Positions 1,697 to 50,557 of a stretch of DNA of 64,000 bases are shown one piece after another. Both the position numbers and the translations under genes were made by a program. The notes beneath the pieces are model-generated. The model made no database searches and was not told where the DNA came from. It saw only the letters and a list, made by a program, of their open reading frames with translations. The DNA lies in assembly GCA_977017575.1 (NCBI GenBank), contig CDRNVI010000030.1, positions 806,001-870,000 of the forward strand, written 5' to 3'. Source of the stretch: Paramoeba atlantica (Eukaryota > Protista > Discosea). How positions within the stretch are numbered: position 1 is the first letter of the stretch; each line of letters starts with the position of its first letter.

Positions 1697-2509
1697 TCAT
1701 GGAAGTTGCGCGCCCCAATGAATTCCATGAGGCACAGCTCCAGGAGGGGTATATCCCGAAAAATTATTCATTCCAAGGTGAACTCTTAGAAAACGTGGGT
1801 CCAATCGTTTTCCACCCTTACGTTTTACACGGGGCGGTGATGGACCGTACTCGCTAAGATCCCCTGAGTTCCTTACATGCATCCAACTGAAATCCACTGT
1901 ACCATGAAAAAAATTGCGCTGTAGGTCGAGTCGACGCAACTTTTTCGGGAGTCTTTCCGTCAATTCGATATTACCAGTCAAAAAATTAGAAGACAAGTTG
2001 ACAAAAACCATATTTGTCGGCAAAGTATTTAGGTCAATGGCTCCGCCAAATTGATTATTAGACAAGTCTATGTAGTTCATATGAGGGGGAAGCGAGTTTA
2101 ACGCAATTGGCCCATTGTGTTGGTTGTTTCTGATATCTAAATTTTGCAATTCTGAGGGGAGAAATGTAAGATCAATACCACCTCCAAGCTCTTGATCAGG
2201 AACAGAGATAAGTTGTACGGTTTGGGGGAGATAAGTCCAGGAAAGATTACCCTGCATGGTATAATGCGGAAAATAACCCCATTCCAGAGAGCGCACTACT
2301 TGATTCTCATCACATGTTGTTCCTTTCCACGTACAGGGTGAAACGTTCAGAGTGCGGAAGAAGCTACGTTTTTTCAATCGCCATGTTGGGTGACGACACT
2401 TCAAGTTTTCCGTGAATTGCCATAGCGCAGCCTCTTGCGGAAGTAGAGACGCATCGACACGTCCGCGACGTACATCAGAGCCATCGTCAAGACTTCTCAC
2501 AAACAACAT
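1697..2509 (-). CDS. Small LRR family protein
   Basis: 270-aa ORF; CTWKGTTC cap; LRR repeats; close paralog remnants at 5213 and 11490. Confidence 0.85.
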   Translation of the reverse strand: MLFVRSLDDGSDVRRGRVDASLLPQEAALWQFTENLKCRHPTWRLKKRSFFRTLNVSPCTWKGTTCDENQVVRSLEWGYFPHYTMQGNLSWTYLPQTVQLISVPDQELGGGIDLTFLPSELQNLDIRNNQHNGPIALNSLPPHMNYIDLSNNQFGGAIDLNTLPTNMVFVNLSSNFLTGNIELTERLPKKLRRLDLQRNFFHGTVDFSWMHVRNSGDLSEYGPSPPRVKRKGGKRLDPRFLRVHLGMNNFSGYTPPGAVPHGIHWGAQLP

Positions 2510-2676
2510 AGAAACGTTATTTCACGAAGGAAAGATGTCAATGTTGGCTAAGAGTGAAGTGTTCATTGAAAAAAATGGAAATTTTGCCTTAATTTAATTA
2601 AAGCAAAATGAATTTACTCTTGTTCTGTTTCTTGGTTGAAGCAATACAGTTTCTGTATTGCTCTGTGGTTTGAAGC

Positions 2677-2705
2677 AAGATACAGTTTCTGCACCTTGTT
2701 GGTAC
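2677..2705 (+). other. Spliced leader (mini-exon) 3' part plus splice-donor-like GTAC
   Basis: Matches the kinetoplastid SL core GATACAGTTTCTGTAC-N4-TTG|GTA with conserved spacing and one T>C change in the core. Confidence 0.75.
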
Positions 2706-3245
2706 TTTTTCCTTAGTTAATCCTTTCTTTCCCCGTCAACGGGTATACTCTTACTGTATTTTTATGCCCGTTGACGGCCGGCACTAAGGTCGGAACTGTC
2801 CCTCTTGTCGCTGAAGCAGGGGACGCGCCTTCACCCCTCCCCGACTCACTCCCCTGGAGTGAGTGTGCTTCCCCTTCTTGGCTTTCTGCGACTTTTTTCC
2901 TCTCCGAGAGGGCTATGCGTCACGGTGGCCTCCCTTGAGGACCACTAGACGTGTCCTCCGCCGACGAGACTCGGCTCTCTGCACCTGGCGGTCGCCCAGC
3001 TCTCCGCACCTCGGCTCTGTCGCAGCTCTCTGCACCCGGATTGCCCCCGAAACTGTAATATGGGGATTACGCATCCGGCTCTCTGCACCTGCATATGACA
3101 ACCGAGCTCTCTGCACCTGGGACGCCAGCTCTCCGCACCCGTACACCTCCGGCGAGGACGAAACCTCACATGATCCACCCGTCGTATGCGGGATAAGGAA
3201 ACAAACAACACAATAAAACAAACAACATAAAACAAACAACACAAG
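2677..3245 (+). mobile_element. Spliced-leader-headed non-coding retroposon-like element, copy E1
   Basis: Starts AAGATACAGTTTCTGCACCTTGTTG|GTAC; about 300 nt colinear with 11831-12328(-); ends in an (AAAC/ACA)-rich tail; possible CAAGAT duplication at 2676-2681 and 3242-3247. Confidence 0.75.
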
Positions 3246-7387: not shown

Positions 7388-9505
7388 TCAGTTATGTTCT
7401 GTATCTGACAATGATTCAAGCTCACTATCATTTTCCAGCGAATCAGAATCACCTTGAGTCATATATCCTAGCTTGTCGCAATTTCCTCGCACGAATATCT
7501 GGTGCGATACAACATCGGGAGTAAGGGAGGCCTGGCGTGAGCTATACATATATCCAAGCACGGAAAGCCAGGAGTCGCACTTGTTGACCAGGGGTGGCGT
7601 CCAAACGTAGTGTACGGCAGCTTCGTAAATCGCTGGGAACATTTCACACCCAGGACCACACCACCATTCGTACTCGTTGCTGAACTTAGACGGATCCCAA
7701 CTGAAATCGAGGCATGCTAAGTATTTTTCCCACTCATCGGATGAAATACGAAAGATCGGCTGCTCGGCCGACGGACCGTCCGCATTTTTGTCAAAAACAT
7801 TATTTGCTCGAGCTACCGAGATGGGGAGAAGACCACAAGGACGAGCGAACTGAACGATCCATCCGGGACGGAACCAGAGAACATCGTTCCAAAAGCGCAT
7901 ATTATGATTTTTTTGTAGACGAGTCTTGTGATAAAGAAGTGCTTCTCGCATTCGCGAGGGCGCTTTGTCACTTTCGCTATGTTCGAACAAGAGCTGCAGC
8001 GTAGTTCCGACATGAGTTGCCATCGGTTTCCCCAACATGTCTGAAAATTTGTTCAATGCTGAATGCAAAACGCTGCATTGTTCAAGAAATGTAAAGCAGC
8101 TTGCTTTAATTTCCAAAGCTCCGTACCGGTCCAGCAAACGCTTACACTTAATAATGGACTTTGACGCCCGTGCCTTTTCACTTTCGCTGTACACAAATGC
8201 CGATACTGTGTCCATATTCTTCGCCAAAAATTGCATACATGTAAACTTATCCTGACACCAGCGCGTCACACCTCCGAGCTTCGGAGTTTCGACACCCTCA
8301 GTTTCACGCGCTACTTGCAAAGCACTAATCAATTTCGGTCCCTGAGCAAGAAGCTGGCGATGCTTCTCGTACCATGACGTGACATTGCATGACAGTGTGG
8401 CAATTAGAGAATTGGACATGTCCGGAGATACCTCCTTCAGCTTTTCGAGGCATCCGATTAGAGTAGATTGTAGTTGTTGACGGCAGAAAACTGGGGCATC
8501 CTCCCCAAGGCCATGGTACGATTGACGGAAGGTTTCTTCCGCCTTCAGAACTCCCTGATCGAAGCGAGCCAGAGCGAGATCCAGAGCAACTCCCTTGTAT
8601 TTCCCTTTTGCTGCACTCGCTCGTCCTCCTGAATAAAAGGACTGACTGAACGCTTTTTTGAAAAGAAAGCACGGTGACTCTTCGTAGGGCTTCAAGGTCG
8701 TTTGGCAAATGTTATTCAGCATATGACCTATGCAAGACAGGAGTATTATCGAAGGGACACGAGAAGATATGCCTTGCTGAAGTGCTGCAGTGTCACTCTC
8801 CCCAATCGGGGAAATTTGGTCATATATGCGTTTGAGAGCTCCTTCGCAATTGTTACGTGCCACGTGATTCACAGAACTTCCGTCCGCGATCATGAATTTT
8901 AGCTTTAAAAGTCGGTGCTCACCAAGATTCGCCTGAAGAGTAAACACTAGTTGTTCGGCTACTGTTTTTCCATCAAAAGCACGATGACTAGGAGAATAAA
9001 TGGGAGGTAAGACGTATTCTTCAGGGCCTACATATAAGACGGACAATAAAATGTGCTCAGACTTTGCTCGGTCGATTCCTGCATCAACGGCAATTCCGTA
9101 CACCATGTGTAAGTCAATGGCAGCGCAAAGCTTCTCCCAGACTTCGTGGGCTAAAATTTCACAGTGTTGATGCCACTTCTTCAAATTTGTTTCCGGAATA
9201 GCCTCTTTGATAACATTCGGTGGAAGGTCGGGGCGGAGATCCTCATACTTGCGAATCAGCCAAACGAATTTACTCGACGGAAGGTTTGTTAGGGTTTGTA
9301 GACATGGGAGCACCTTCCCAGTGAATCTTTGAACGGCCGCTCTCTGAATAAACGAAACCTGCGCAGTCGCCAAGCGAGCTCGCTCCACGCCCTCACGATA
9401 CTTGCGTACATGCTTATGATAGACGTTTTTAAATCGGCAATGAGATTGAAACGTGCTATATAATAATAACGTGCTATACGCTTTCACCGGATACAACCCC
9501 GACAT
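7388..9505 (-). mobile_element. hAT-like transposase, uninterrupted 705-aa ORF
   Basis: GIAVDAG (D1), IADGSSVN (D2), CIGH (CxxH), VTRW, C-terminal FPAIYEAA...PPLVNKCDSWLS resembling the hAT dimerisation motif. Confidence 0.7.
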
Positions 9506-10229
9506 TGTTCAGTACCTTTCACAGACGTTTAATTGCTCCAACGTTCAAGTTTTTTGCGCTATTTCAATGTTGCACATGAATTTAACTTTCGAACAGGCTT
9601 GTACTGTTCTTTATCCTTACATTGGCAATCGACTTTTTTCTCCTGCATGGTTTAGAAAGTCGATTATGGAACCTGTTCTTGCTGCCTCCAACAACGTAGG
9701 AAACATGGCTGATGTTGAAAGAAGATTTCGAGTGCGTGAAGAGAACTATTTTATGTGTACTTCAATTGTCGATGGACTTCCCGTCTTCAGCAGGGGCCCG
9801 CAAAGTCTGTATAACGGAAAGAACGCCACAAAATACTGGACTTTTCAGGTCTTCATCATGATCGACGGCTGTCCCTTAGCGTGGAGTGGGCCCTTTGAAG
9901 GTAGCATGCACGACAGTGAATACTTGGCTGGGTCCGATATTTATGGATGGACCCACAAGGTGGATGAAATGGTGATTGCAGACAAAGCTTACCGATCTGT
10001 GCGCCACTGTCTTTGCCAAGAAACAGGTTCTTCCCTCGATGATCTACATGTATTTGACATAGATTTTCGACGTGTGAGAAACCGAGTAGAACGGGTTTTT
10101 GGGCATTTAGACAAGCACAAACTGCTCCACTACAATCAGCATAGCAAAGAATTTCTGAAGTCGGCATTCGGACTTCTGTGGAACAGTGAGTGCGTCGACT
10201 GGCGTATTCGCCCTCGGCAACTTATTTAA
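9453..10229 (+). mobile_element. PIF/Harbinger-ISL2EU (IS5-like, DDE_Tnp_4) transposase
   Basis: IVDG...YNGK...Q...GPFEGSMHD...ADKAY...R.RVERVFG; all three catalytic residues present; likely ATG at 9568 or 9577. Confidence 0.85.
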
Positions 10230-11290: not shown

Positions 11291-11830
11291 AAACCCACCC
11301 GCTACCATCAATAACTCGGTGTACTGTGTAACAAAGATCTATAATAGGATCTACAGTCTATAATAGGATCTATAATAGGAGAATAAAACCAAGTTGCTCT
11401 ATTTACTACATTACTTATGCGCAGTACACCGAGTTATTTACGAAAGATTGCCATTGAAACAGTTGAAAAAGGATCTTCACTTCGAATATTTACGAAGTGA
11501 GCTCAACACAATGGGCCCATCTAGATGGTTCCTTCGGATATCCAAATTTTGCAACTCCGAGGGGAGAAACGTAAGATCAGTACCACCTCCGAGCTTTTGA
11601 CCAGCAACATTTAAACCTTGTACGGTTTGAGGAAAATGAACACAGGAAAGAGTACCTTCCTTTGTTATAGTGAGATAGAAAATCCCAGTCTAGCATGCGT
11701 CAAATAACATGCTGTTCGATTCGAATCACATCTTGTTCCCTTCCACGTGCAAGGCGAGACGCTCAAAGTGCGAAAGGAGCTACGTTTTGTCAATCGTCAT
11801 GTTAGGTGGCGACTCTTCAACTTTTCCGTG

Positions 11831-12328
11831 TGTGTGTTGATCATGCGCTCGTTGGCGCAGAGACAATCCCCTTCATGCGGTGGCCGATATCATCGGCACA
11901 TAATCCGCCCACAACGGATGTCGCCAAAAGGGGTTCGACGCGGACTCTGTCGGTAGAGGGGGTCCAAGCAACTCGCCCTCTCTTTACGCATCCGGAGGGG
12001 CGCACTGCAACCGACCGCTGCCTCGCGATAAGACGAGGCAGAGTCACGCCCAGTGGTGCTCAAGGGAGGCCACCATGGCGCATAGCTCCGGGGAAAAGAC
12101 AGGCACGAGAAGAAGAGAGCCGGTGAGGGAAGAAAACTCACTCAAGGAGTGAGCCGGGGAGGGGTGAAAAGTCGGAAGTACGTCCCCTACTTCCACGACA
12201 AAGAGGGACAGTCCCTGCTACCCGTCAGCCGGAAACGGGTATTTAAAGGGAAAATGTATGCCCGTTTCCGGGAAAAGAAAGGAAGGGCTAGCAAAATGTA
12301 CCAACAAGGTACAGAAACTGTATCTTTA
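11831..12328 (-). mobile_element. Spliced-leader-headed non-coding retroposon-like element, copy E2
   Basis: Minus strand starts TAAAGATACAGTTTCTGTACCTTGTTG|GTAC; hairpins homologous to E1; (CA)n tail; insertion point defined by the intact paralog. Confidence 0.8.
12298..12328 (-). other. Spliced leader 3' part plus donor-like GTAC
   Basis: 16/16 match to GATACAGTTTCTGTAC, 7 nt to the TTG|GTA junction as in kinetoplastid SL RNAs. Confidence 0.8.
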
Positions 12329-12778
12329 TGCCGTAGCGCAACTTCTTGAGGAAGAAGAGATGCATCGACAGAAAAGAGAAGAGCTTGCAAAAAATCATAA
12401 AATAACGTTCAAGTTACTTCACTGAAAAAAGCTTTACACGCTCCCTGAGATATTATTGATGTCTATGATAATGTAGATTTTATCAAAATATATAGAAAAT
12501 ATAATAATAATATAATATTTTATAATGTTAATGTAAAATGTATACAAAAATATTTTTAAAGTATTTTTAAAAATAAGTTTTCTTCCTGAAGAAAGAAATG
12601 CGAATGAAAGTTTCATTATGAAACTGTCATTAGTTTTTTGTTTTTATGTAACATATTTTGCTGAGTAACAGGAAGCCCAGTTGTTTAAAGATTTGTAACG
12701 TTTGAATATCCGCACACATGCATAAATGATATGAAAGAATTTTAATTCACAAAATTACCTAAAAAACGTAAAGATAAA

Positions 12779-13510
12779 TCAATCGATGCGTACCGAACCA
12801 GGTAATGGCTTTGGTAGATAATCGAATATTCTATTTTTCGTGAGATCAATATGCTTTATGGACTTCGGAAGATAACGAAAATCGCAAAATCCAGAAAATT
12901 GATTGGCTTGAAGAAAGAGGTACTGGACCTCGTTTGGGAGTTTAGTCAAGTCTAGGCTTCCCGAAAAGAAGTTGTTGCTCACAGACACGCAAAGCAGAGC
13001 ACTCGGAAGCGTAGTCAGGTTCAATGAACCTTCTAGCTCATTTGTGTGCACGGAAAAATCCTCCATGGAGGGAGAAAGACGATCCAAGTCTATAATCCCG
13101 GAGAATTTATTTCTGGACAGCCACAGAACTGCCAAAGAAGGCGGAAGATTCGTAAGGCCCAACGAACCGTGTAGCTTATTAGTGTTAAAGCGAAGTGTGT
13201 GTAACTCTGGAGGCAACTCGTCGAGATTAATGGATCCGGTCAGACTATTATCTCCAAGAATAAGTTGCTTGACGGACAGCGGAGATCGCTCCAGATCTAG
13301 ACTGCCACGTAAGTTTTTGCTTTCCCAGAGAATGAACCGGACTTCTTTTCCTGAATCATCATCGCAATGCACACCCTCCCAGTCACAAGCCGGAGTGTGA
13401 GTGTTCCATGTTGCCCTTGGGTTTTCTATCGACTCAATGAAAACCCCTAATTGGAATTCTGGAGGGAGCTGGGATCCCCGAACTCTACCCTTTCGTATAT
13501 TTACGTCCAT
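12779..13510 (-). CDS. Small LRR family protein
   Basis: 243 aa; CDWEGVHC cap; 23-aa LRRs. Confidence 0.85.
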   Translation of the reverse strand: MDVNIRKGRVRGSQLPPEFQLGVFIESIENPRATWNTHTPACDWEGVHCDDDSGKEVRFILWESKNLRGSLDLERSPLSVKQLILGDNSLTGSINLDELPPELHTLRFNTNKLHGSLGLTNLPPSLAVLWLSRNKFSGIIDLDRLSPSMEDFSVHTNELEGSLNLTTLPSALLCVSVSNNFFSGSLDLTKLPNEVQYLFLQANQFSGFCDFRYLPKSIKHIDLTKNRIFDYLPKPLPGSVRID

Positions 13511-16614: not shown

Positions 16615-17523
16615 TCACAACATCTCGTACAACCCCAGCGCCCCTAGCGCCGCAATAATCCCCGCCAGGTACGGTTCCAGCGACCCTTTCTCACTATCCC
16701 GCACCCTCCCCCGCGCCGGGGCCTGATCCGGCCACACCAGCACCTTATTCCGGCGCAGGTCCAGCAACCGCAGCCGCGGCGACAGCCGCTGGATATCCAC
16801 CACCCCCGAGAGCTCGTTATCCTGCAGCAGGATATGCTCCAGCCTCGGGGGCAGCGCCCCGACCTCGATCCCCCCCGTGAAGTGGTTCGAGCACAGCGCG
16901 AGCATCTGCAGCGGGGCGGGGAGCGCGGTGAGGTCCACGGCCCCCGTGAAGGCGTTGTAGGAGAGCCGCAGGGAGCGCAGCCCGGGGGGGAGGGCGCCCC
17001 AGTCCACGTCCCCCGTCAGGCGGTTCCACCCCACGTGGAACCACAGCACCGAGGGGGGGAGGTGGGCCCAGGAGAGGTTGCCGAGGAGCCCGGCGCGCTC
17101 GAGGTTGACCTTCTCGAGGCCCCGGTGCGGGTCCTCGAAGGCCCCCGCGGTGAGGAGGGTCTGCACGACCGGGTCGTACTGCGCCCGGATGATGTGTTGG
17201 AAGAAGCGCTGGAGCTGCTGCTGGGGGGTGGGGAGGAGGGCGCGGGAGGGTTTCCCGAGGCGGGGGGAGGGGGAGGGGGGAGGGGGGGCGTCGGAGGGGG
17301 TGGTGAGGAGGGGGTGAGGGGAGGGGGAGAGAAGGAGGAGGGCGAGGGGGAGGAGAGGGGTGAGCAGCATGGATAGGGGGGTTAAGGAAAGGGGGGTAAG
17401 GAAGAGGGGAAGGAAAAGGTGGTCTTTGGTTTTTGATGGAAAGGGTGGATGGAGGATACAGAAAGGGTTTTGGGATGAGGAAAAGTGAGGATATAAAGAA
17501 AAGGGTTTTTTGAGGTTATACAA
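16615..17523 (-). CDS. Membrane-anchored LRR protein (likely start ATG 17370)
   Basis: MLLTPLLPLALLLL signal-like segment; LRR repeats; C-terminal hydrophobic helix; very GC-rich. Confidence 0.8.
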   Translation of the reverse strand: MYNLKKPFSLYPHFSSSQNPFCILHPPFPSKTKDHLFLPLFLTPLSLTPLSMLLTPLLPLALLLLSPSPHPLLTTPSDAPPPPSPSPRLGKPSRALLPTPQQQLQRFFQHIIRAQYDPVVQTLLTAGAFEDPHRGLEKVNLERAGLLGNLSWAHLPPSVLWFHVGWNRLTGDVDWGALPPGLRSLRLSYNAFTGAVDLTALPAPLQMLALCSNHFTGGIEVGALPPRLEHILLQDNELSGVVDIQRLSPRLRLLDLRRNKVLVWPDQAPARGRVRDSEKGSLEPYLAGIIAALGALGLYEML

Positions 17524-17630: not shown

Positions 17631-19358
17631 TTATAACCACCTACGTAGGAAATTCTGCGCAGCAACGCGGAGTGAAGGAAGTTGCAGTCCAGGCTTCGTC
17701 GCTGGGGAAGCGCGAAACAACGCCTGTTGGGGTGCAACGTTGACATTGTTCACGGATCTTGCCGTGGGCAACGTGGGCTTCAGAGGTTTGTTGTCAAAGA
17801 GTGGAGCGAATGGAGTAGTGTTGTCGTTAATCGAATCAGGCAAAACCTCTGTGCATTTAATACGTAGTCGGTGTTTCTGATAGTGCGCGAGGACATCGCT
17901 CACACTGTGGCTTGGATCCACATAGGCTACAGCAGATTGGCTCTGTGCCCACTCGATCTTTCCTTTAAGCGGCAACAGAGAGGCAGCAGCTTCAATATCA
18001 GATACCTCCTCCGCGTACTCCAAGCGAAACACATGAGTGGAAGGCATCCATTGATATCCTTTTGCAAGGTGAATGTAATAGAGTGACCGAAACAATACCA
18101 TACTATTTTGATACTTTGATAGCATTGAGACCGTGACACGCTTTCGGAACTGTTCGAAAACGTATCCTGTACAGAGAGCGTCAAATGCCGCCTCGTGGGC
18201 AAGTGCCGGTTGGGCGCGCCGCTCGGAACGTTTCTTTAGAGCTTCGGCATAGCGTTCGAAACCTAGTGGAAACTCAATCCCCGGAACTGGAGATAATTGA
18301 ATGTGATGAGGGGATTCTAGGACTTGAGGAAAGGGAGGATCGGATTCCTTTGTTCTAGCAAGCTTTTGGGCTTTCTCTTCTTCAGCCAGAAAATAAGTAA
18401 ATAAATTTTGTAGAGCGGTTGACTCAAAAAGCGGAAGCAATCCGCACGAAGAAGCAAGTATTTTAGTGTCCCAAATGGCGGGAAAATTTTCTTTCGCGTA
18501 GCGCTGCAGTGATTCAATGTCCTCCGGAACAATGCCGTCCATATGAGCGATCAGAAACAACAGATCCATGAGAAGGTTGTGCCCAACTATTGGTTTCTTC
18601 GACTCCACAAGAGTTTTGTAAATCTTACGAAAACCAACAAAAGAAAGGTGCTTCTCAATTGCTTTCTGAATTTGAGAACTCCGGTCTTGCCTACTTGCAA
18701 TCCAAAACTTGTTCCGCTGAAAAAATCTAACATCAAGCTGCAACGCCTGAATATGTCGCTCAACAAGCTTCTGAAGCGATCTATCCTGAACTTCTGGGAG
18801 CGGCAATTCAGCACTTTCAGAGTCTCGCAACCAGGATTCTATTCTCTCCCGTACAGGTTGGACTTCTGGATTTTCACAATCAATAGAGCTTCCCGGTTTA
18901 GGACTCAGGGAATCACATAGCGCCTGAAAGTGCCGTGCCTCTTCTGAGGCCGTGCAATAACCCACACCCTCATAAATCCACTTTTGAAAATCCATGTTGT
19001 GGTGCCTATTAAAATGAATCGCCTCGGGTTCCAACACTAGACTGCGGGTGGCTCGCCGTTCGATATCGCCGCTTGGGAATACGAAGAAGTTGAATGGACG
19101 GGCCAAAATAACGTCTGTATCGTTGTTTGCTAATGTCCGTCTCTCAAACAAACATAGACCAATTTGTATGAGACCGTAGGTCTCTGCAACTTTTCTTTTC
19201 GTAGAATAACTCTTAGAAGGGCTATCGAAACATGATTCCTTCAAGTCAGGTAACGTAATTCCAGTCATTTCGGCATCCAAGGCCACAAATTCGCTTCGCT
19301 CTAGAAGCTCACCAAATTCGCGTTCTACGGCTAAGAAGTTTGATTTCGTAACGTCCAT
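17631..19358 (-). CDS. PARN: Poly(A)-specific ribonuclease (CAF1/DEDDh family)
   Basis: ALDAEMTG, FNFFVFP, DFQKWIYEGV, PIVGHNLLMDL, WDTK, HEAAFDALCTG; first ATG at 19358 (ORF open to 19397). Confidence 0.92.
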   Translation of the reverse strand: MDVTKSNFLAVEREFGELLERSEFVALDAEMTGITLPDLKESCFDSPSKSYSTKRKVAETYGLIQIGLCLFERRTLANNDTDVILARPFNFFVFPSGDIERRATRSLVLEPEAIHFNRHHNMDFQKWIYEGVGYCTASEEARHFQALCDSLSPKPGSSIDCENPEVQPVRERIESWLRDSESAELPLPEVQDRSLQKLVERHIQALQLDVRFFQRNKFWIASRQDRSSQIQKAIEKHLSFVGFRKIYKTLVESKKPIVGHNLLMDLLFLIAHMDGIVPEDIESLQRYAKENFPAIWDTKILASSCGLLPLFESTALQNLFTYFLAEEEKAQKLARTKESDPPFPQVLESPHHIQLSPVPGIEFPLGFERYAEALKKRSERRAQPALAHEAAFDALCTGYVFEQFRKRVTVSMLSKYQNSMVLFRSLYYIHLAKGYQWMPSTHVFRLEYAEEVSDIEAAASLLPLKGKIEWAQSQSAVAYVDPSHSVSDVLAHYQKHRLRIKCTEVLPDSINDNTTPFAPLFDNKPLKPTLPTARSVNNVNVAPQQALFRASPATKPGLQLPSLRVAAQNFLRRWL

Positions 19359-21309: not shown

Positions 21310-21504
21310 TATTGGTGCGAATACGGACCAAAAGAGACTTAATTTATATTGAAAGCACTGCAGATACTATGCCCCCCGCAAATTGCCGCGGTTTTTGACC
21401 GAAACGTACTATACTATACTATAAGTGGGGAGTGAAGTTTAAAATTCCCGTTTTCAGGGAAGCTCTTGAGAAGCATTTATAAATCTTGAGAACGGAGTAA
21501 TTTA

Positions 21505-21690
21505 TCTTTTTTAGACTCTTCGTTAAACGAGGTGGTTGTTTTCAACTTAGAAGTCACTCATGCTGCGCGCTTCGCGTTGAAAACTACCCCCGCGTTTATT
21601 ACCGCTCTACCCTCGATTATTGAAAAAAAAGTGAACAAAAACAGTGAAAATATAAGGAGGAAATACAAAGAGGAAAAGAATACATTGCGG
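21505..21690 (+). repeat. Fused B-palindrome and A-end of the asymmetric hairpin element family
   Basis: Matches 31257, 40035 and 48250 (B end) and 39286 and 37766 (A end). Confidence 0.8.
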
Positions 21691-22179: not shown

Positions 22180-24219
22180 GGCGTTACTATGCAAGCTCGG
22201 TGCCCTATTATTGTCTCATCGGTGAGGAAGGCCCCATAGGTGAAACTGAAGCAAAATTCGGGGTTTTTCAGTTTTTGTCCATCAAATTCTCTGATTGTAG
22301 AAAATACTTATCCAGAGATCTTATTCGTGTTTTCTTGAGTTTTTCGCTATTCTTTTCGTCATTTTCAGTTACTTGGTCTATCTTTCCATGCCTTTCACGG
22401 CATGTGTTGGGCTTGCTTGTCGGCGAAAGCTAACAATAAGTAAGATTGGAACTTGGACCGAAAAGCAGTGCGTGGAGTGGCTACAAAATCATAAGTTGGT
22501 GACACAAAAGGTCATATGTTGCAGACGAAATCATACGACTGACCACACTATGGAAATCAATGGTGAAAAATGGAAGTGCACGAAGTCTTGCAAAGGTATA
22601 GAAGGGATGTATGAGAAGGCGGGTCCACTATTGCCGGGAAGGGCGCAGCGAAGCGCTAAACAAACACTGAAGTACATACAGTCCAGCTCTTGGCTTCCCC
22701 AGGCTCCAGAGCGCAAAGAGAATTGCGCTTGCGTATACATACATGTATAGCATGTATAGCATTGCGCTTGCGTATGTATAGTGTCCACATTTTAGGCCTA
22801 AGTTTATTGATGACGCTTACATAAGGTGACCCCTTCCTTATGGTATCTCCACTTGGAGCGAGCTCTGGAGAGAGGTAAAGCGACGTGGCTTCACATGTTC
22901 AATAACATGCCTAAGGAACATGTTGAAAAACTCAAAAGAAAAGATTGTACTCAGAACAGCTTTAAAGACCCCTTTCTTATCTAATAATCATAAGGAGCGC
23001 ACAGTGCAATTTGCCACTGAAATGCTACAGTGGAGCGACGCTGCGCTGGAAAATATTATTTTCTGCGATGTAAAATTTTTTACGTGCAAAAGATCCACCC
23101 GACCCACGTACCTTTACCGAAAATCTGACCCCCCCAAAGAACAAACAGGGGAATTGGAACCCTATCATGGTGGAGAAGGTATTATGGTTTGGATGGGGGT
23201 GAGCTTAAAGCATGGGTTTGATTTACACGTTTTTCCTACCCATGATTCTCAAGGAAACAAAGTAACGGTAAAGGGACAATTTTTTTACCAAGCCATGAAA
23301 AAGAGGGGGGGGGTCTGTTCTAATATTTAAGGAGACAATAGTGATGGACAATTGCCCGGCACATAATAAGGATCGTGCCGCTGCCCAAGAAAAGGGTTAT
23401 TCTTGGCTCCAGCACAATCCCCCGATCTAAACCCCATAGAGAATCTTTGGTCAATAATGGACGGGATAAAGGACCAAATTCAACCCAAAAATCAACAACA
23501 ATTACTCTCCGCAATTCATGTTTCCTATGGTAAACTTAAGACAGAACAAAGATCTAAATTTGAGAATACGCTAAAACGCTTCAGAAAGCGTTGTAGAAAA
23601 GCACGGTGCACAGTGCGGATACTAAAAGGGGTTACTAACAATCTTCTTGGGGAAAAACGTTATTTTTTAACTTTTTTGCATCATTTTTATGTGACAATTC
23701 GTGTTTTTGACCTATCCGGCATTTGTACTTCCACTTTGATACGTCATCCAGTTTTCCCGTCTTTCCTCCTATATCACCTTCCATTTCTAGAAGAGAAGGT
23801 GCTAAATTCTAGAACGTTCCTGCTTTTTTCTAAATTGTTTAGAAAAAAATACGAAAAGTTTTAAAAAAATCGCCCCCCTTCGGGGGGGGGCACACAAAAA
23901 ACGAAGTATAAAGGGGGGGGGCTGACCAGCGAAGTATAAAGGGGGGTCACAGTATGTTAAAAGCTACCAACACGAAGACACACAACTCTATGAGAGCTCT
24001 CGAGTGCGCTATTATTTTCCAAAATTGAAAAGTTTTTACAAATTTTAGACCCCCCCCCCTAGATGGAAGTTTTCACCCCTTCCGCACTTTAAACCTAAGT
24101 TGTCAGTTTAAGTTTTTCAACATTTTTTGAGCAATTTTTGAACAGATTTATGAAAAAAGCGAAAAAACCGAATTTTGCTTCAGTTTAGCCGCCCCATACT
24201 ATGGGGCCATAGTAACGCC
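22180..24219 (+). mobile_element. Merlin-like (IS1016/ISXO2-type) element relic with nested Tc1
   Basis: Long imperfect TIRs GGCGTTACTATG...GCCCCATAG...AAACTGAAGCAAAATTCGG at both ends; relic N-terminus TEKQCVEWLQNHKL...C...WKCTKSC; no TSD found. Confidence 0.6.
22830..23952 (+). mobile_element. Tc1/mariner transposase pseudogene with right TIR
   Basis: KTPFLS..HK..R, IFCDVK, GIMVWMG, MDNCPAH (frameshift), PAQSPDLNPIENLW; ends GGGGGGTCACAG-TA. Confidence 0.85.
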
Positions 24220-26110: not shown

Positions 26111-26586
26111 ATATTATACAGGGGGGATCAGCTAATGCTGGGGGGGTCTAAAATTTGCAAAGCTTGGCCAATTTTGGAAAATAATAGCGCATTCGAGAGC
26201 TCTCACACAGCCCTTCTGTGGAGGATATGCCGTTGTGCATAAAATCAACAATTTTATAAAATGGTATACCTGGTTGGGTACCATAATGCATGTATCGGCT
26301 CTCCACGTGAATAAGAAGTGTATAATGAAGTGAATAAGAAGCAATTCTGATTAAAACGAGCTAGAAATCTTGTTACTGCTTCCTTTTTTCAGTACGCAAC
26401 GCCGCCGGATTGCAAAGCGGGTTCGAGCCTCCATGCCAAACGATTCCTCGCAACACGTCGATGCCGGGAGTAACCTGCCTCTCGAACGGGGCAGAAGAGC
26501 TAAGAGAAATTCAGAAGAGGAAGCACCCTACGATTTATGAAGCTGCAAAGCATAATACAGACCCATGTACATGTACATAGTTTTCA

Positions 26587-29608: not shown

Positions 29609-31251
29609 CTGTACCCCCCCGTTTATAATAGCCTCGCTTTTGCCCAAATGAACCTATAAAGGGGGGAGGGCGATTAAAAGTCGGCACAGAAATTGCCCTA
29701 CATTTGGGAGCGAGGAACCAGGAATTATTTAATCGCTAAGTGGGCCCCTGCGCTCTGCCAAAGTAAAATGTCCAGCACGAACCCGCGCCACACCTCGAAG
29801 AACCATGTGAAAATAAATATCAAAATATTTAAGATGGTGCAAGAAAAATAAAAAACTCTTCCGCGGGGAGAGGTCGAGGCTATTAAACCCCTCCGCATCA
29901 AAAAGGCACCCACCCTTATTTTTCGCATGAGGGGGGCTAGGGGGGTTATCGCACCACTTTATCGTGCAAAATTTTGAGATCTGTACGTTCCCGTTGTCTT
30001 TAGGTCATTTCGAAAAATAAAAAAAGTTGAATTTGTTTCTAATTTTTTTTCACTTTTCATGCCAAAAAATACGTATCGACTCCCCAGGGGTGGTCTTACA
30101 GAAAGTGGAAAAGTGTTATTACGCATGAGGCTTGGCCAAGGGGTTGCGATAAGGCAACTAGACCGCGAGTTTAATGTCAATGTGAAGCATATTCGAAAAT
30201 ATTTGAAAAAAAATCGCCGGAAAATATTTATTCTCTGAGCCCTGAAATAAAAAAAAGAACCAAAAAACGGAGAAGCCTCGTTAAAGATACTATTGAACCT
30301 TTAGACCGAGCGGGGGTCCCCATAAATGGGTCTGCTCGCAAGATTCGCGGTAAATTGAAGAGAAAGGGTATAAATGAATCTTCAGACACCGTTAATAGAG
30401 ATATTAACGGTGTCTGAACGGCTACACATATGGGTTACGGCCTTTATCTCAAGGACTGACAGAGGTGCAGAAAAACAAAAGGGTGTTGTTTGCTAAAAAT
30501 TGGGAAAAGTTAAAGTGGGACACCTCTCTTTTAGTTTTCACTGATGAGAAAATATTTGATACGAATGATCATCGATCAAAAATGTGGGTAGCTCCCGGCC
30601 AAAAGCCTGTGAAGCGGCAAAGAGTGCGTTGGGCACCCAAATGTCATGTGTGGGGAGCCGTGGGAGTAGGCTATAGACACCTTGTTATTCTCCCCACCAA
30701 CTCAAATACATATGTTTCGTACATTAAAACATTAAAAAAAGTATCATTCCCCCCAAACTGTATTTTTCAGCAAGATGGGGCAACACCTCACACTGCCAAG
30801 GAAACAAAAGCGTACCTTGAGGACAGCAAAATGAAATTATTGAAAAATTGGCCGCCCAACTACCCCGATCTCTCACCAATAGAAAACGTGTGGAGCATGG
30901 TACAAAATCTTGTAGATGAATACAATCCTGCAAAGAAAGAAGATCTCATAAAAAGCGTACGTAAAGCTTGGCGTAAATTGCCTCAAGATTATATTGATGA
31001 TTCGGTTTTGAGCTTCGATGCTCGCCTCAAAGCTTGTGTGGCGAGTAACGGAGAAAAGGTGACAAAATGGTAATCTCTTTCTAAAATATACGTATTCGTT
31101 TCTTTTTGTCTCATTTTTTCGCGCGCAAAGTCTGTGCGTTGAGATCTGCAAAATGCAACAAAAATCAGCTCAAACGGACATTTGGCTGAAAAGTTAAGGG
31201 TGGGTGCCTTATTGGTACGGAGGGGTTTATAAACAGGGGGGGGGGGTACAG
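29609..31251 (+). mobile_element. Tc1/mariner element with both TIRs and TA TSD; 5' part of the transposase decayed
   Basis: TA|CTGTACCCCCCCGTTTATAA ... TTTATAAACAG(G)nTACAG|TA. Confidence 0.9.
30465..31073 (+). CDS. Tc1 transposase catalytic domain (DD35E spacing)
   Basis: FTDEK, VWGAVG, FQQDGATPH, WPPNYPDLSPIENVW; 35 residues counted between D and E. Confidence 0.9.
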   Translation: MQKNKRVLFAKNWEKLKWDTSLLVFTDEKIFDTNDHRSKMWVAPGQKPVKRQRVRWAPKCHVWGAVGVGYRHLVILPTNSNTYVSYIKTLKKVSFPPNCIFQQDGATPHTAKETKAYLEDSKMKLLKNWPPNYPDLSPIENVWSMVQNLVDEYNPAKKEDLIKSVRKAWRKLPQDYIDDSVLSFDARLKACVASNGEKVTKW

Positions 31252-31256
31252 TAAAT

Positions 31257-31862
31257 TCTTTTTTAGGCTCTTCGCTAAACGCGGTGGTCGTTTTCAACTT
31301 AGAAATCACTCATGCTGCGCGCTTCGCGTTGAAAACTACCTCCGCGTTTAATGAAGAGCCCAAAAAAGAAAAATCGCCAAAAGGTCATGTATAATCTGGT
31401 TTTTTGGATGAAAAACCTCGATTTTTCGACAAAAATTGCGAAATTTTAACGCTAATTTGGGCCGTTTTTGATGCCTTACCAGTAGGGGCAGGAGGCGAAT
31501 CTGTCGAAACAAACGTCGTAGAATGGCAGTAGAGGTCCAAAACTCTTAAAATACGTTTTAGGCACAGCAGCAGTAATAATTTTTGTAATAGAAATTATTA
31601 ATAATTTTTATTATTATAAGAAGGTGAATTATTAATAATTATTATGAGGACTTCTTTAGCCCTCATGGGGCGTATAGTAAGCGTACACATGTGTACATGT
31701 GGATATTTTTTTCAATTTGTTTTCAGTTTTGGACCACCGGAGCCCCATTTTATATTTTTTTCTTCTATTATATTACTGTGTTTCTCTTTATATTTTCACT
31801 GTTTTTGTTCACGTTTTTTTCAATAATCGAGTGTAGAGCGGTAGTTTTACAACCACCGCAAT
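31257..31862 (-). mobile_element. Asymmetric hairpin-ended non-autonomous element (B end left, A end right)
   Basis: About 110-bp palindrome at the left; A-end in reverse complement at the right; interior matches 48362-48555. Confidence 0.7.
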
Positions 31863-32233
31863 ATTATTGACCATATAACCGTGGGATAATACTTGTACTA
31901 TTTGCAAGAAAAAAGTTCGGTATAGAGAGAAGAAATTACTAGAAAGAAAAAGAAAAAGAGTACTTCCTTACGAAAGGCTAGTAATGTTACGTAGCGGCAA
32001 GAATAACTAGAACCTATCAAAGTGATATAAGAAATATAACATATTTTGAATTGCTGCACAAAATTACTTACACTTCCATGACCTAAATGCAAGAAAGACT
32101 AAACAAAGAAGGGAAAAAGTGAAATTATTAGACTACCTAAATTACGCTCTTCCCATTTGTCTTATATTTTATTAGTTATATTGGTGCATGGTGAATCATA
32201 TTTAAACATAAAGAAAATTAACAAAGAAGCGGA

Positions 32234-37136: not shown

Positions 37137-37760
37137 TAAGAAGAAGAAGAATAAGAAGAAGACAGAAGAAGACACGGAGGGCTCTGCAGCGCCAACCGGT
37201 AGGGTAGAGTCTCAGGCCACCGACCTTCATCGTCTTGCTACCCCCTTCCCAGACGGCACTCGACGCCTTGCGGCCCGAGCACGGCTACCCAACCGTAGCT
37301 ACCAGGACGGGCGTCCAACCCCGTTGCATCGTGTAGGCTGTGTCTCAAGCCTCCTTTGCGTAAGCAGCTCGCAATTTGGCGGCTGCGCTAGAGCCTGGTT
37401 CAGCTCGGCGGTTCCGGGTCGGTTCTCCAGGGGAGCGGGGTTGAGTGTGGGCCTTGAAGGCACTCCTGATCGCTTTCCCTTTGTAGTGAGGCCGCCAGGT
37501 TGCAAGTTTTGTCGATAGCGGGAATCGAACCAACAACCTGCAGGTTGTAAGGCCCACCATCTACCAACTACGGTCTACTTTGTAAGAGCGTCTTCCAATT
37601 TTTGGACTACGGCAGGTTCGTGGAGCGCTGCCTAAAACACTATCGCCCAAGACTAGAGAGGGTTGTTGTGGAAAGTCTTAAAGTTATACGATCTGCAATC
37701 CCTGGTGAATCTGACTAACTTCTCGCAGTGGGATGTCAGAGATCTCTCGTGGTAAGACAA
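37137..37760 (-). other. GC-rich non-coding island (E3) with degenerate tRNA-like module and (TCT)n tail; SINE-like
   Basis: Minus strand has D-arm CCGT-AGTTGGTAG-ATGG and GGTTCGATTCC at 37511-37578 and a simple-repeat tail at 37137-37172. Confidence 0.45.
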
Positions 37761-37765
37761 ATGTA

Positions 37766-37860
37766 CAATTGCGGTGGTTGTAGAACTACCTCTCTACCCT
37801 CGATTATTGAAAAAAAAGTGAACAATAACAGTGAAAATATAAAGAGGAACACAGTAATAA
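37766..37860 (+). repeat. Solo A-end of the hairpin-ended element family
   Basis: ATTGCGGTGGTTGTAGAACTACC...CGATTATTGAAAAAAAAGTGAAC matches 39286. Confidence 0.85.
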
Positions 37861-38500: not shown

Positions 38501-40297
38501 CAGGGGTCCGAAAAACTTTTAAAGTTTTATTTATAGCAAAAAAAAATATAGTACTATATTGATGCTACAAGTACTTCAAAAACTTCAAAAACTATAAATA
38601 AATAGGCAACCATTTTCGGCCTTCGGACTGGTACTTCGCTCGTCAGGTGGTCTATGGCAGGGAATGATCAAAGGTCAAGAGGGTTATGTCAGACATTTTT
38701 TTCAAAAGCCTATCTTCTTTGCTGCGGATGCACATCAAAACGGGTTGCAGCTTGACAAATATCCGTTGCACGTCCGAATATTATGAACAAGTTAGAATAC
38801 GCAATATCGGAAAATCACGGAATCGACGTCGCTGAAGCGTTGGCCTTAGAACTGGAAGCAAACAAATCGATGGATTTGAAGCCAAGTTTAGTTATTATTG
38901 CATCTGATAATAATGTGGTAAGCCGCAGTTTGGATAAGGGTTTTAACTCTTCTTGTGGCGTTGGCATAATAATAAGCGAATTAACACAATGAATTATTCT
39001 TGAGGGAATGAAATAGTGCTGGCAGATGTAGCGCCACGAGAAAATACTGGTGACATACATAGGTACGCGACTTGAAAAAACTGCAGGGACTTTGGTTTCT
39101 GAAATACCTTATGGCCCAGATGCCACCTGATCTTACCTCCGAACCAACCCGAAACGTTCGTGCTACACGACCCTCGATCAGTCAACAAACCTCTGTTGAA
39201 CGTCCGAGCCGTCAAACGCCGATATGAAGCTCTATAGACAAAAAACCATTTATGTTTGAGGCAAGAAATCACTAAGGAATACTTTATTGCGGTGGTTGTA
39301 AAACTACCGCTCTACACTCGATTATTGAAAAAAAAGTGAACAAAAACAGTGAAAATATAAAGAGGAACACAGTAATATAATAGAAGAAAAAAATATAAAA
39401 TGGGGCTCCGGTGGTCCAAAACTGAAAAAAAAATTTGAAAAAAATGGGGGGTCCATGGGGGGGGTCCAGGGGGGGGATCATGGTCGAGCAAATTTTTTCG
39501 AAAAAATTAGTTTTCGAAAAAAAACCGCAGAAAGGGTAGGCGGGGTAGCCGGGGACCCCCCCGCGTATCCGCAGGACGGGTCCGCCAAGTTCGGATTTTT
39601 TCGGAAAAAATTTTTTGAAAAAAAATTCAACTTGGCGAAAAATATGACAAAAAAAATATTTTTCCAAAATCGTTTCCCCTATTGTATTTTGATAGCTTGG
39701 GACCTACACTAGCTTTCTCCGCAGTTGTTTCCGCAAGGTATCACTTCTTCTAACCGTGGTGCGCCCCTCAAAATGACCCATTTTTGACTAAAAAAGGTGA
39801 AAAAGTATTTTTCGGACCTAAAGGGGTATTTTTGTGTCGAAAGAATGGTATGGTTGGAGTCGCATTCTCCACCCAATACGTTCGGTAGGCTTCCACTCAT
39901 GCCTGCGAGTGATTTCCCACGCGCAAATGTCGGATTTAGTGCTCTGAGAGCAAAAATATGCGAAAATGACCCCATTTTTACCCGAAATTCGGCTATTTTT
40001 GGCTATAATCTTTCCGTTTTCCAGGCTAAATTTTCTTTTTTAGGCTCTTCGTTAAACGCGGCGGTAGTTTTCAACACGAAGCGCGCAGCATGAGTGACTT
40101 CTAAGTTGAAAACAACCACCGTGTTTAACGAAGAGCCTAAAAAAGAATTACACAGAAGAAAATATATAAAATGTTATCTGTCACTCTTCAATTGTCGAAA
40201 TCTCTAGGTGAAAAATATAGTTTAATATATAGCATGAAATAAAATATAGTACTATAAAGTACTATATTTATAGTTTTTGAAGTTTTTCGGACCCCTG
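38501..40297. mobile_element. TIR element relic (CAGGGGTCCGAAAAACT) hosting a nested insertion
   Basis: 17-bp perfect inverted repeat at 38501 and 40281-40297, with further similar subterminal blocks; TSD not clear. Confidence 0.6.
39286..40146 (+). mobile_element. Asymmetric hairpin-ended non-autonomous element (A end left, B end right)
   Basis: A end at 39286; B palindrome at 40035-40146; interior colinear with the reverse complement of 48500-48680. Confidence 0.7.
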
Positions 40298-48230: not shown

Positions 48231-49063
48231 TATAAATACATAATTTATTTCTTTTTTAGGCTCTTCGTTAAACGCGGTGGTTGTTTTCAACTTAGAAGTC
48301 ACTCATGTTGCGCGATTCACGTTGAAAACTACCAACGCGTTTAACGAAGAGCCTAAAAAAGAAAAATCGCCAAAAGATCATGAATAATCTATTTTTTTGG
48401 GTAAAAAAGCTCGATTTTACGGCGAAAATTGTGAAATTTCAACCCGAATTTGGGCCGTTTTTGATGCCTTACCAGTAGGGTCAGGAGGCGAATATGTCGA
48501 AAAAAACGTCGTAGAATGGTAGCTGAGGTCCCAAACTCTCAAAATACGTTTTAGGAGTCGATTTTGGAAAAATAATATTTTTACTTTTTTTTGGGTCAAT
48601 TTTTTTGGTCATCCCTAAAATTTCAGAAATTTTGACCTTGTCGGACCCCTCCCTGCGCGTACCAGGGGGGGGGGGTCACCCCCAGGGGGGGGTGGAAAAT
48701 TATCGGCGCGACCTACTCCACCACTTCCCTGCGCTCGATTTTGAAAAGCAAAAAATTCGAAAATAATTTCGCGACGTACAGTCAGTAAAAAAACCTTTCG
48801 AATGTTTCGAATTCTTTTTCTTTTGTATACAGCCATTGATTAATTATCACTTTTGCGCTGGTAATGTGCGCTAGTAGTGTAGGCATGAGTGTCACCTAAT
48901 AGTACCCATAGATAGTTCACCTCAGTTCGTTCTGCCCAAGAATTAAGAATAAATTTAACAAAAATTAGCATTCGAAAGGTGATTTTGCTACCTAACATAA
49001 ATAAAATATTGCATCAAAAAATAGATAAAAAGTAATTGCCCAAGAGAGTATATGCCCATAAAT

Positions 49064-49653: not shown

Positions 49654-49865
49654 ATGAGGCCCACACCACGGTACTTACAAACGCAAATTTCGGAGCTTTA
49701 TGATAGCGGGTTTTCGATGAGTTACATTTCTGTTAATTTAAATCTAAGCATACCTACAGTTTCTAAAGTATTAAAGGCAGAAAGACCTGCTACTCGCAGG
49801 CTAAAGGGGGGTCGCCCTCGCAAGATTTCCGAGTCGTGCGCACGACGTGCGCGACGACTTGTGTT
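49654..49865 (+). mobile_element. Tc1 transposase N-terminal HTH fragment
   Basis: I.ELYDSG.SMSYIS..LNLS..TVSKVL...GGRPRKI. Confidence 0.8.
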
Positions 49866-50557
49866 TTGGACCACCGTGGCCCCCTTTTATATATTTTTCT
49901 TCTATTATATTACTGTGTTCATCTAATATTTTCACTGTTTTTGTTCACTTTTTCAATAATCGAGGGTAGAGCGGTAGTTATACAACCACGGCAATGTACA
50001 GTTATACGAAGAGATACTGTATTTGTATATTTATACTTGTATATTTCTTTCCTTTCTGGTGGGCATGCCGATACAGCAATATCTGGCGCGTACATCGACA
50101 CTGTGCAACACATGCGATTAATTTGTAGAATAGTTAAAAGACGAAATAGATAAGAACTATACTTGGAGAATGGCAGCAGACTCTGCAATGCGTTTAGACT
50201 TAAATTTTTTGAGGGGCTGAAGGAAGAGTTTACAGTCTCGTGTAAGTCTTCCCAGTGTTCTCACCTAGTTGCCCCGATTGACCGCTGACACCCTGAGAAG
50301 CCCGTAACATAGGCCTAACCTAACGTTCTTCGGCATGAAACCGAGAAACGAAAAAACAATCTTTTACCCTATTCTGGTACATTCTCACCCATCCCGACCC
50401 AAAAATCAAATAACAATTTCAAATAATAATTTATAAAGCTCTCCTCAATCAACGGAGAGGTTTCCTCCTCTATACTGAACTGAATATTGAACTGAGTACT
50501 ACGTAAGGTGGAAGAAAATTTACTTCTTTAGTGCTTATTTAGGCTTTAAGTAAAATC

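Follow-up and report, generated by a model that had tools for sequence, protein, structure and literature searches.

A probable SINE-like retroposon family headed by spliced-leader sequence in a deep-branching kinetoplastid genome

Genomic relics of spliced-leader (SL) sequence associated with retroposition have been described in several systems, with which we compare here a family of short elements, termed E, two copies of which lie in a 64,000-nt stretch of contig CDRNVI010000030.1 (assembly GCA_977017575.1, positions 806,001 to 870,000; hereafter the window). The genome of Perkinsela sp. CCAP 1560/4 has one intact SL RNA gene, described as having a 38-nt exon and a 468-nt intron (Tanifuji et al., 2017, PMC5601477), and over 500 SL RNA gene fragments at dispersed sites, most of them ~370 nt long and without the mini-exon (PMC5601477, Suppl. 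Note 1.3, Tables S1.3.1-2). Also described are more than 30 stand-alone modules of mini-exon plus 20 nt, 24 cases that lie beside ingi-like retrotransposons, and a long interspersed nuclear element (LINE) transcript bearing the SL; the authors proposed reverse transcription or retroposition (PMC5601477). In dinoflagellates, retrogenes are recognised by a relict DinoSL at their 5' end (PMC6050394, PMC5585692). The CRE clade (SLACS, CZAR, CRE1/2) consists of elements with a reverse transcriptase (RT) and a restriction-like endonuclease (RLE) that are confined to trypanosomatid SL genes (PMC12278014, PMC5814959), and RIME, NARTc and SIDER, of 0.26-0.55 kb, are non-autonomous partners of ingi and L1Tc (PMC3383444, PMC2323293), elements whose unspliced RNA is made via the internal promoter Pr77.

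E is probably a non-autonomous, non-coding retroposon family of ~0.5 kb, similar to short interspersed nuclear elements (SINEs) and divided into two subfamilies. Its copies are built from an SL relic, a ~300-nt paired module, a subfamily-specific 3' module and an A/C-rich tail. The family is not categorically new, and the initial annotation of the window, which did not recognise it as described, was right only in part: SL fragments near Perkinsela retrotransposons (PMC5601477) and dinoflagellate retrogenes with SL relics (PMC6050394) are published, whereas we have not found described the combination seen here, in which a SINE-like element has an SL relic as its head and a LINE-like 3' end and occurs together with two SL-headed LINE classes and a canonical SL gene. 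Literature searches with the head sequence gave no match.

The two window copies, E1 and E2, are in opposite orientation and have the following parts:
2644-2660, plus strand: partial duplicate of head and flank, ATACAGTTTCTGTAT, within a perfect 9-bp palindrome, 16 nt upstream of E1
2677-2701, plus strand: E1 head, SL exon nt 14-38, 24/25 identical, one T to C
2702-3199, plus strand: E1 body, structured, RNA-like and non-coding, its first ~300 nt common with E2
3200-3245, plus strand: E1 tail, A/C-rich (ACAAACAA-type), 46 nt
11831-12301, minus strand: E2 body and 3' end, terminating in CAACACACA, with the 3' border ambiguous between 11825 and 11831
12302-12329, minus strand: E2 head, SL exon nt 11-38, 28/28 identical

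The 64 kb contain the 27-mer GATACAGTTTCTGYACCTTGTTGGTAC at just two sites, 2679-2705 (+) and 12298-12324 (-), where the chance expectation is zero (100 shuffles), and the shared 29-mer heads in opposite orientation that had been reported were located at 2677-2705 and 12326-12298. The colinear body followed by divergence, likewise part of the initial annotation, is recovered both by BLAST, which aligns 2677-2953 with 12326-12045 at 72% identity over 290 nt, and by MAFFT, which extends the colinearity to ~330 nt, beyond which the sequences are unrelated. Heads are 24/25 identical and the aligned body 63% (P ~2e-4); no other 25-nt window of the element is as well conserved as the head. Stops interrupt all six frames of both copies and the frames are not conserved, in agreement with their description as non-coding; a protein search with an E2 open reading frame (ORF) returned only a spurious bacterial CNA-B-type repeat protein and was set aside. 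The A/C-rich ends are also present, as the E1 tail and the short CAACACACA of E2. The 3' ~200 nt of the E1 body are specific to the E1 type and contain seven CTCTCTGCACC-like boxes and a terminal hairpin, then GATAAGGA. The coordinates of E1 (2677-3245) stand, and the SL match of E2 proved one base longer than had been drawn, starting with ATAAAG at 12329 and not at 12328; E2 thereby begins at SL nt 11, and E1 at SL nt 14. No Rfam family was found at gathering score in the whole window, nor in E1 or E2 at E<=10, and no tRNA was found.

The head corresponds to the spliced leader of the organism, as the initial annotation had supposed. A metagenome scan yielded a 1785-bp contig (L003; JGI, Ga0316204) that contains a 5S rRNA gene (98 bits) and an SL RNA gene on opposite strands and that, because its ends overlap, represents a tandem unit; two further matches from the same scan, L002 and L004, were rejected as chance matches in coding DNA. 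The SL RNA gene of L003 has the exon AACTTTAACGATAAAGATACAGTTTCTGTACCTTGTTG, followed by GTATGAGAAGC..., a G+C stem-loop and a T-run. Its exon ends with exactly the 28-mer that heads E2 and runs on into the canonical GTATGAGAAGC intron. A complete copy of the exon (38/38) lies in contig ctg3842l of the window's own assembly, after an A-rich tail, and since both this relic and the L003 exon match, the organism's SL contains the 25-mer on which the annotation rested. Past GTA, the E body resembles the L003 intron no more closely than shuffled sequences do. E copies thus differ from SL RNA genes or pseudogenes in that exon nt 1-10 or 1-13 are missing, the canonical intron is missing, they are not in tandem and they have no 5S link. 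Conversely, no E or LINE sequence lies inside L003, the sole SL gene unit available.

E2 is a proven insertion, given that a decayed leucine-rich-repeat (LRR) gene is split by it and a paralogue is unbroken at the same point, providing both a filled and an empty site:
2089-2459, minus strand: uninterrupted LRR paralogue (the empty site), within the intact LRR ORF 1697-2509
11494-11830, minus strand: LRR pseudogene, downstream half split off by E2, 75% identical to 2089-2414, with an in-frame stop and frameshifts
12330-12420, minus strand: LRR pseudogene, upstream N-terminal piece, matching 2418-2459

In a self-BLAST of the window, 2089-2414 matches 11494-11830 and 2418-2459 matches 12329-12370 (all +). 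The insertion point maps to 2414-2418, between the codons equivalent to ALWQF and TENLK, and comparison with the empty site leaves an ambiguity or deletion of 0-3 nt.

Contig ctg3951l of the European Nucleotide Archive (ENA) assembly ERZ24900291 matches the window at 99.7% identity, and this assembly gave access to further contigs of the same organism: ctg3842l (L005) was reached via P0241, the sole real match in a protein-level search with an E1 ORF and itself part of another E copy, and L006-L014 were added by walking along contigs and by looking up clusters at 90% identity. A profile search of the resulting ~197 kb gave five E copies, so that three more join the two of the window, in line with the initial annotation, which called for further copies of this architecture elsewhere in the genome:
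E1, window 2677-3245, plus strand: head from SL nt 14; A/C tail
E2, window 12329-11831, minus strand: head from SL nt 11
E2-type copy, L005 18860-18282, minus strand: 93% identical to E2, with equal head start and an 80-nt internal duplication
E1-type copy, L005 10102-10496, plus strand: 94% identical to E1, ending at the equivalent of window 3199, without an A/C tail
Short E fragment, L013 ~18965-19055, plus strand: head starting at nt 11, then GTAC and ~55 nt of the body

The E2-type copy is flanked by stretches that match LINE sequence elsewhere in its contig. The E1-type copy of L005 lacks the head and the first ~140 nt, and its missing tail shows that this part of the element is variable. 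Flanks of the copies are mutually unrelated; an nhmmer extension of the match between E1 and the E1-type copy into the flanks was discarded as alignment overrun, because BLAST supports only window 2818-3199. A search of viral contig and genome contig collections with an SL 23-mer and the E core gave no match. Multiple copies, unrelated flanks and the empty site of E2 all agree with the SINE-like mobile family that the initial annotation proposed: E has dispersed copies, a demonstrable insertion and no coding capacity. It differs from a classical SINE, whose head would come from tRNA, 7SL or 5S and contain an internal RNA polymerase III promoter.

The RNA of E would be strongly folded. Minimum-free-energy z-scores against shuffled sequences are -3.1 and -4.0, and a consensus fold of four copies has 70 pairs (97% of cells paired), among them 11 compensatory pairs, compared to 0-4 in slid-partner controls. 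Examples are a 14-bp hairpin with UA/CG to GC/AU swaps and a 14-pair GGUGGCCUC hairpin. A TGTACC/GGTACA hairpin spans the junction of head and body in E2. A fold resembling that of hepatitis delta virus, or a pseudoknot between the head and the first hairpin loop, was considered by eye and dropped, the two copies pairing in different registers.

SL relics are not limited to E. The same contigs contain ~16 others, each of which ends at exon nt 38, so that E heads and these relics alike are joined exactly at the exon end, as in relics of the dinoflagellate type. Beyond a short U/C-rich leader, the sequences that follow them are mutually unrelated. Many lie 20-40 nt upstream of the first ATG in LINE ORF arrays, most at array 5' ends, and several are directly preceded by the A-rich 3' tail of an upstream element; none has an L003-like promoter upstream, and none is followed by the SL intron beyond the element. 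The LINEs fall into two classes:
Class with an apurinic/apyrimidinic endonuclease (APE-type): LsmAD-like ORF1; one array also shows APE, RT and RNase H; SL head from nt 1-3
Class with a restriction-like endonuclease (RLE-type): RT only in Pfam, best PDB matches to R2 proteins; SL head from nt 13-16 (4/4)

In LINE-C, a family of the RLE class, two copies have the SL joined 12 nt apart, as expected from alternative SL addition sites.

Some features of these heads deserve separate mention. Directly after the SL relic, most LINE-type heads have a U/C-rich leader of ~20 nt (A(A/C)TTATTTTCTTTTC-like; an example is L005 17778-17760 (-)); apart from it, the elements are unrelated. At a 3' splice site, a polypyrimidine tract should lie on the upstream side, whereas this leader sits downstream. 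Another short SL-headed element, of ~680 nt, is found at L012 9231-9915 (+), directly upstream of a LINE head; in it, all 38 nt of the SL are followed by a leader rich in U/C, a non-coding body rich in G+C and a C/A-rich tail that resembles poly(A). Several heads are stuttered, with a partial SL 5' portion, or head plus flank, directly upstream of the main relic. The SL-like palindrome at 2644-2660 of the window is one such 5'-junction stutter, and similar ones occur at other SL heads:
L012 9220-9270 and 9915-9970
L010 (ctg3842l record), ~6218 and ~8495
L014 9693-9728
Window 2644-2701

In L014 an internal GTACYTTGTTG is duplicated. The stutters suggest template jumps during formation of the 5' junction. 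Finally, four otherwise full-length relics read A(T/C)CTTTAACG at nt 2, not AACTTTAACG, which could reflect either misreading of cap-4-modified nucleotides by the RT or simple inheritance:
L005 17816, 2467 and 2309, minus strand
ctg3842l record, ~50699

Several features link E to the RLE-type LINEs. Three RT ORFs, of 1617, 1459 and 1109 aa, have R2 as their best PDB match. The 1617-aa ORF continues with a CCHC finger and then an RPD..E.T RLE motif, and the 1109-aa ORF stops at the CCHC finger, with RLE-like sequence just past its stop codon. E heads, which start at nt 10/11 in three copies and at nt 14 in E1, resemble those of the RLE class, and differ from the heads of the APE class, which are full-length. 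At the other end, the E1-type 3' hairpin plus GATAAGGA matches the beginning of the LINE-C 3' untranslated region (UTR) (P<=0.001 versus shuffles), with one compensatory stem change, and the same hairpin opens the 3' UTR of the 1617-aa LINE (RT1617), 14/15 identical (P ~0.01). The last ~70 nt of the E2 type are colinear with the whole 81-nt 3' UTR of RT1617 (P ~0.01), in which a hairpin, a CTCTGC box, a second hairpin, CATGA and a ACAAACAA-type tail follow one another; tails of this type are present on E1 and the RLE-type LINE alike. Both subfamilies have such a match, in the position where it would be expected, and each match leads to an RLE-type LINE, which is suggestive of the usual signature of a SINE/LINE partnership. 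The alternative that E is the 5' UTR of a LINE was discarded, as no E body lies beside any LINE ORF in the sample (BLAST, nhmmer).

On balance we lean towards E being a partner of RLE-type LINEs that is copied from an SL-bearing RNA, most simply a trans-spliced one. Of three models offered in the initial annotation, a retroposed trans-spliced RNA is the best fit to the exact exon-end joins and to the LINE-C joins 12 nt apart. A master E copy would be transcribed, probably within a polycistron, and its RNA would gain the SL by trans-splicing, giving the exact join at the exon end. The RT of an RLE-type LINE would then recognise the LINE-like 3' end of this RNA and copy it into new sites by target-primed reverse transcription, with the cDNA stopping, or being joined, short of the first 10-15 SL nucleotides. 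Retroposition of an SL-bearing RNA would explain why E and unrelated elements are joined exactly at the exon end, as well as why heads are so much better conserved than the body. Trans-splicing as the source of the head, the LINE that mobilises E and the reason for the truncated head are all inferences.

A number of observations weigh against this account. Directly after the head stands GTA, the first three bases of the SL intron, for which the chance is 1 in 64. All E heads lack SL nt 1-10, and three share their start base, each after a C; a start fixed in this way fits better with an inherited or processed 5' end than with trans-splicing in each cycle. (The shared C itself was considered as a derived base and dropped; in at least the window copy it is derived from the flank, because the LRR paralogue also has GGCA.) In the sampled contigs, which lean to transposon-rich ones, no headless body preceded by a splice acceptor was found that could be the source locus, and no target-site duplication of more than 6 bp exists at four E copies. 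The similarities between the 3' ends of E and LINEs are short (blocks of 15-26 nt, or 70 nt with gaps) and of modest significance, the covariation rests on two independent lineages in a fold derived from the same sequences, and L003 is tied to the organism of the window by its identical exon only, from which we infer the same or a sister organism.

A rival reading, which we consider unlikely, is that the masters of E and of the RLE-type LINEs reside in SL RNA genes, at or just past the exon end. Co-transcription from the strong SL promoter, with the 5' end set near SL nt 10-16, for example by a self-cleaving fold like that of R2 or L1Tc, would produce RNAs that begin with SL sequence, and dispersed copies would be off-target insertions bearing the upstream SL piece. 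Heads of E and RLE-type LINEs are indeed cut to nt 10-16 in 8/8 cases, with the other LINE class full-length; a start at nt 10/11 is found in 3/4 E heads versus 0/16 others (Fisher P 0.0035); and this start is homologous to the insertion point of CRE, SLACS and CZAR, nt 11/12 of the 39-nt SL (PMC5814959). The partner LINEs are RLE-type, as is the CRE clade (PMC12278014), the GTA after the head equals the first bases of the intron, conservation among 25-nt windows peaks at the head and the 5' module is strongly structured. However, L003 contains neither E nor LINE sequence, and copies of E and RLE-type LINEs are without flanking SL promoter, SL intron or 5S. The join at nt 38 is also present on unrelated elements, including the APE-type LINE, which trans-splicing explains simply; no Rfam ribozyme family was detected even at E<=10; and start points vary within LINE families (nt 13 and 16 in one, 13 and 14 in another). 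For the corresponding model of the initial annotation, an element resident in SL genes, the RLE-type LINEs with shared 3' motifs are therefore a point in favour, and the SL gene without any E or LINE copy a point against. A yet more specific version, slightly more doubtful, is that the 5' module of E (SL relic plus junction hairpin) acts as a self-processing or promoter unit that sets the RNA 5' end at SL nt 10/11, with E and RLE-type LINE masters in SL genes. Its analogues would be Pr77/L1TcRz of L1Tc or the R2 ribozyme using host-gene sequence. R2 RNA, as Eickbush and Eickbush reportedly found in 2010, bears upstream 28S sequence at its 5' end after ribozyme processing of a co-transcript. 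This analogy, in which the RNA of an RLE-type LINE begins with a piece of host gene and has a structured 5' module, would serve residence in SL genes only. If the 5' module does act in this way, a CRE-like lineage would be exploiting the SL gene from the exon-intron border and spreading genome-wide, and the 'SL RNA pseudogenes' of Perkinsela would be a SINE family of this kind.

Other origins of the head are less probable. That E copies are retroposed pseudogenes of a long-intron SL RNA, such as is annotated in Perkinsela, finds some encouragement in the size of E2 (28 nt of exon and ~470 nt, near the 468-nt 'intron' of Perkinsela), in the dispersed Perkinsela copies, in the GTA after the exon and in the TGTACC/GGTACA hairpin across the E2 junction, but is improbable: in L003 the same exon belongs to a short SL RNA gene of canonical form, linked to 5S; SL nt 1-10 are present in no copy; and the 3' halves of the subfamilies are unrelated to each other and resemble LINE 3' UTRs. 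Most directly, origin from SL RNA itself, also put forward in the initial annotation, was rejected because the canonical SL intron and the E body show no relationship. Even less credible is a one-off ancestral template switch from a headless body RNA to SL RNA or an SL-capped mRNA, comparable to U6/L1 chimeras, with the head inherited ever since. The fixed truncated start of E heads and the stutters at several 5' junctions, which indicate jumps, would suit such an event, and GTA could derive from unspliced SL RNA; yet a landing at the exon end is improbable and all ~20 relics end there, and the head is far better kept than the body, contrary to what an unconstrained inherited relic predicts. 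We give practically no weight to E being immobile, that is, a chance SL-like motif, an assembly artefact or a segmental duplication. Few copies lie within the window itself, but zero chance matches are expected, the independent ENA assembly ERZ24900291 reproduces E2 at 99.7% identity, flanks are unrelated at all copies and an empty paralogous site is present.

Of the described systems, that of Perkinsela resembles the present one in its prokinetoplastid-grade genome with many small LRR genes and dispersed SL-related units of ~370-500 nt. The SL sequence differs (the Perkinsela primer ends ...GTTCAGTTTCTGTACTTAATTG), and unlike the published reading, in which the repeat is the SL intron, here we find an SL gene with a short intron, an unrelated body, LINE-like 3' ends and RLE-type LINEs. 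Going by the published description, the 'SL intron' repeats of Perkinsela may be the same kind of element. Shared with DinoSL retrogenes are a genomic SL relic whose join lies at the exon end, 5' truncation of relics and, in some cases, their tandem arrangement; those retrogenes are copies of mRNAs, whereas here retrotransposons and a non-coding SINE-like family are tagged, in a kinetoplastid. Judged by motifs, the candidate partner LINEs are similar to the CRE clade in having RT, RLE, a zinc finger and an association with the SL, and the E head starts at a position homologous to the CRE clade insertion point. CRE elements have SL gene on both sides, whereas E has its SL piece only 5', is dispersed outside SL genes and has no ORF, and its 3' flanks are LRR pseudogene or unique DNA, not SL gene. 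With RIME, NARTc and SIDER, E shares its occurrence in a kinetoplastid, non-coding nature, presumed mobilisation in trans, conserved 5' module and A-rich tail. Those elements have the Pr77 signature, unspliced transcripts, 12-bp duplications and APE-type LINE partners; E has an SL relic as its head, no clear duplications and an RLE-type LINE-like 3' end.

The SL relics on both LINE classes and on a SINE-like family indicate routine retrotransposition from SL-bearing RNA in a kinetoplastid, where the relic could serve, as in dinoflagellates, as a built-in tag of retrocopies. For RLE-type LINEs, E and its presumed partner add a candidate SINE/LINE pair from outside the animals. More speculatively, a TTG-ending relic before a gene would mimic a TG acceptor, which may bear on the many non-AG (TG) 'acceptors' of Perkinsela.

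The host is a deep-branching kinetoplastid; among named organisms, prokinetoplastids are its nearest relatives. Nearly all long ORFs of the window are on the minus strand and encode eukaryotic housekeeping proteins (Sua5, FtsJ, CAF1/PARN, a protein kinase, MutS, SDA1, a PP1-type phosphatase and DHHC); numerous small LRR proteins and two DDE transposase ORFs lie among them. For Sua5 and SDA1, the best matches from named organisms are in the free-living prokinetoplastids PhF_6 and PhM_4 (41-43% identity), with SDA1 33% identical to that of a Trypanosoma. Perkinsela, too, has been noted for its strand polarity and for small LRR genes in great number (hundreds of leucine-rich proteins; PMC5601477). 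In the window, the small LRR/FNIP-repeat proteins are 220-300 aa long and scattered through the polycistron, all on the minus strand, and the pseudogene split by E2 (11494-12420) belongs to their family; DNA transposons, such as those to which the transposase ORFs would belong, are rare in kinetoplastids:
510-1343, 1697-2509, 12779-13510, 16615-17523, 50558-51214, 54882-55676 and 62577-63341, minus strand: LRR/FNIP-repeat ORFs
9453-10229, plus strand: DDE_Tnp_4 (Harbinger/PIF-like) transposase-domain ORF
30465-31073, plus strand: DDE_3 (Tc1/IS630-like) transposase-domain ORF

Contig ctg3951l ends near position ~4050 of the window, 0.8 kb from E1, and runs 27 kb past its right end; the first 14.7 kb of this extension are without E copies or SL relics.

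The window also has short dispersed repeats of at least two families, 80-97% identical and in either orientation, which are possibly miniature inverted-repeat transposable elements (MITEs) related to the DDE_3 element at ~30.5-31.9 kb:
21498-21667, 31254-31863, 37759-37859, 39286-39445, 40031-40150, 48241-48555 and 49863-50003

A further MITE-like repeat of ~80-100 nt, which starts with CAGGGGGGTAAAT..., is present as inverted pairs at two unrelated loci:
Window 23975-24055 and 26116-26210
L005 10538-10642 and 11177-11283

The pair in L005 lies between the E1-type copy and a LINE 3' end.

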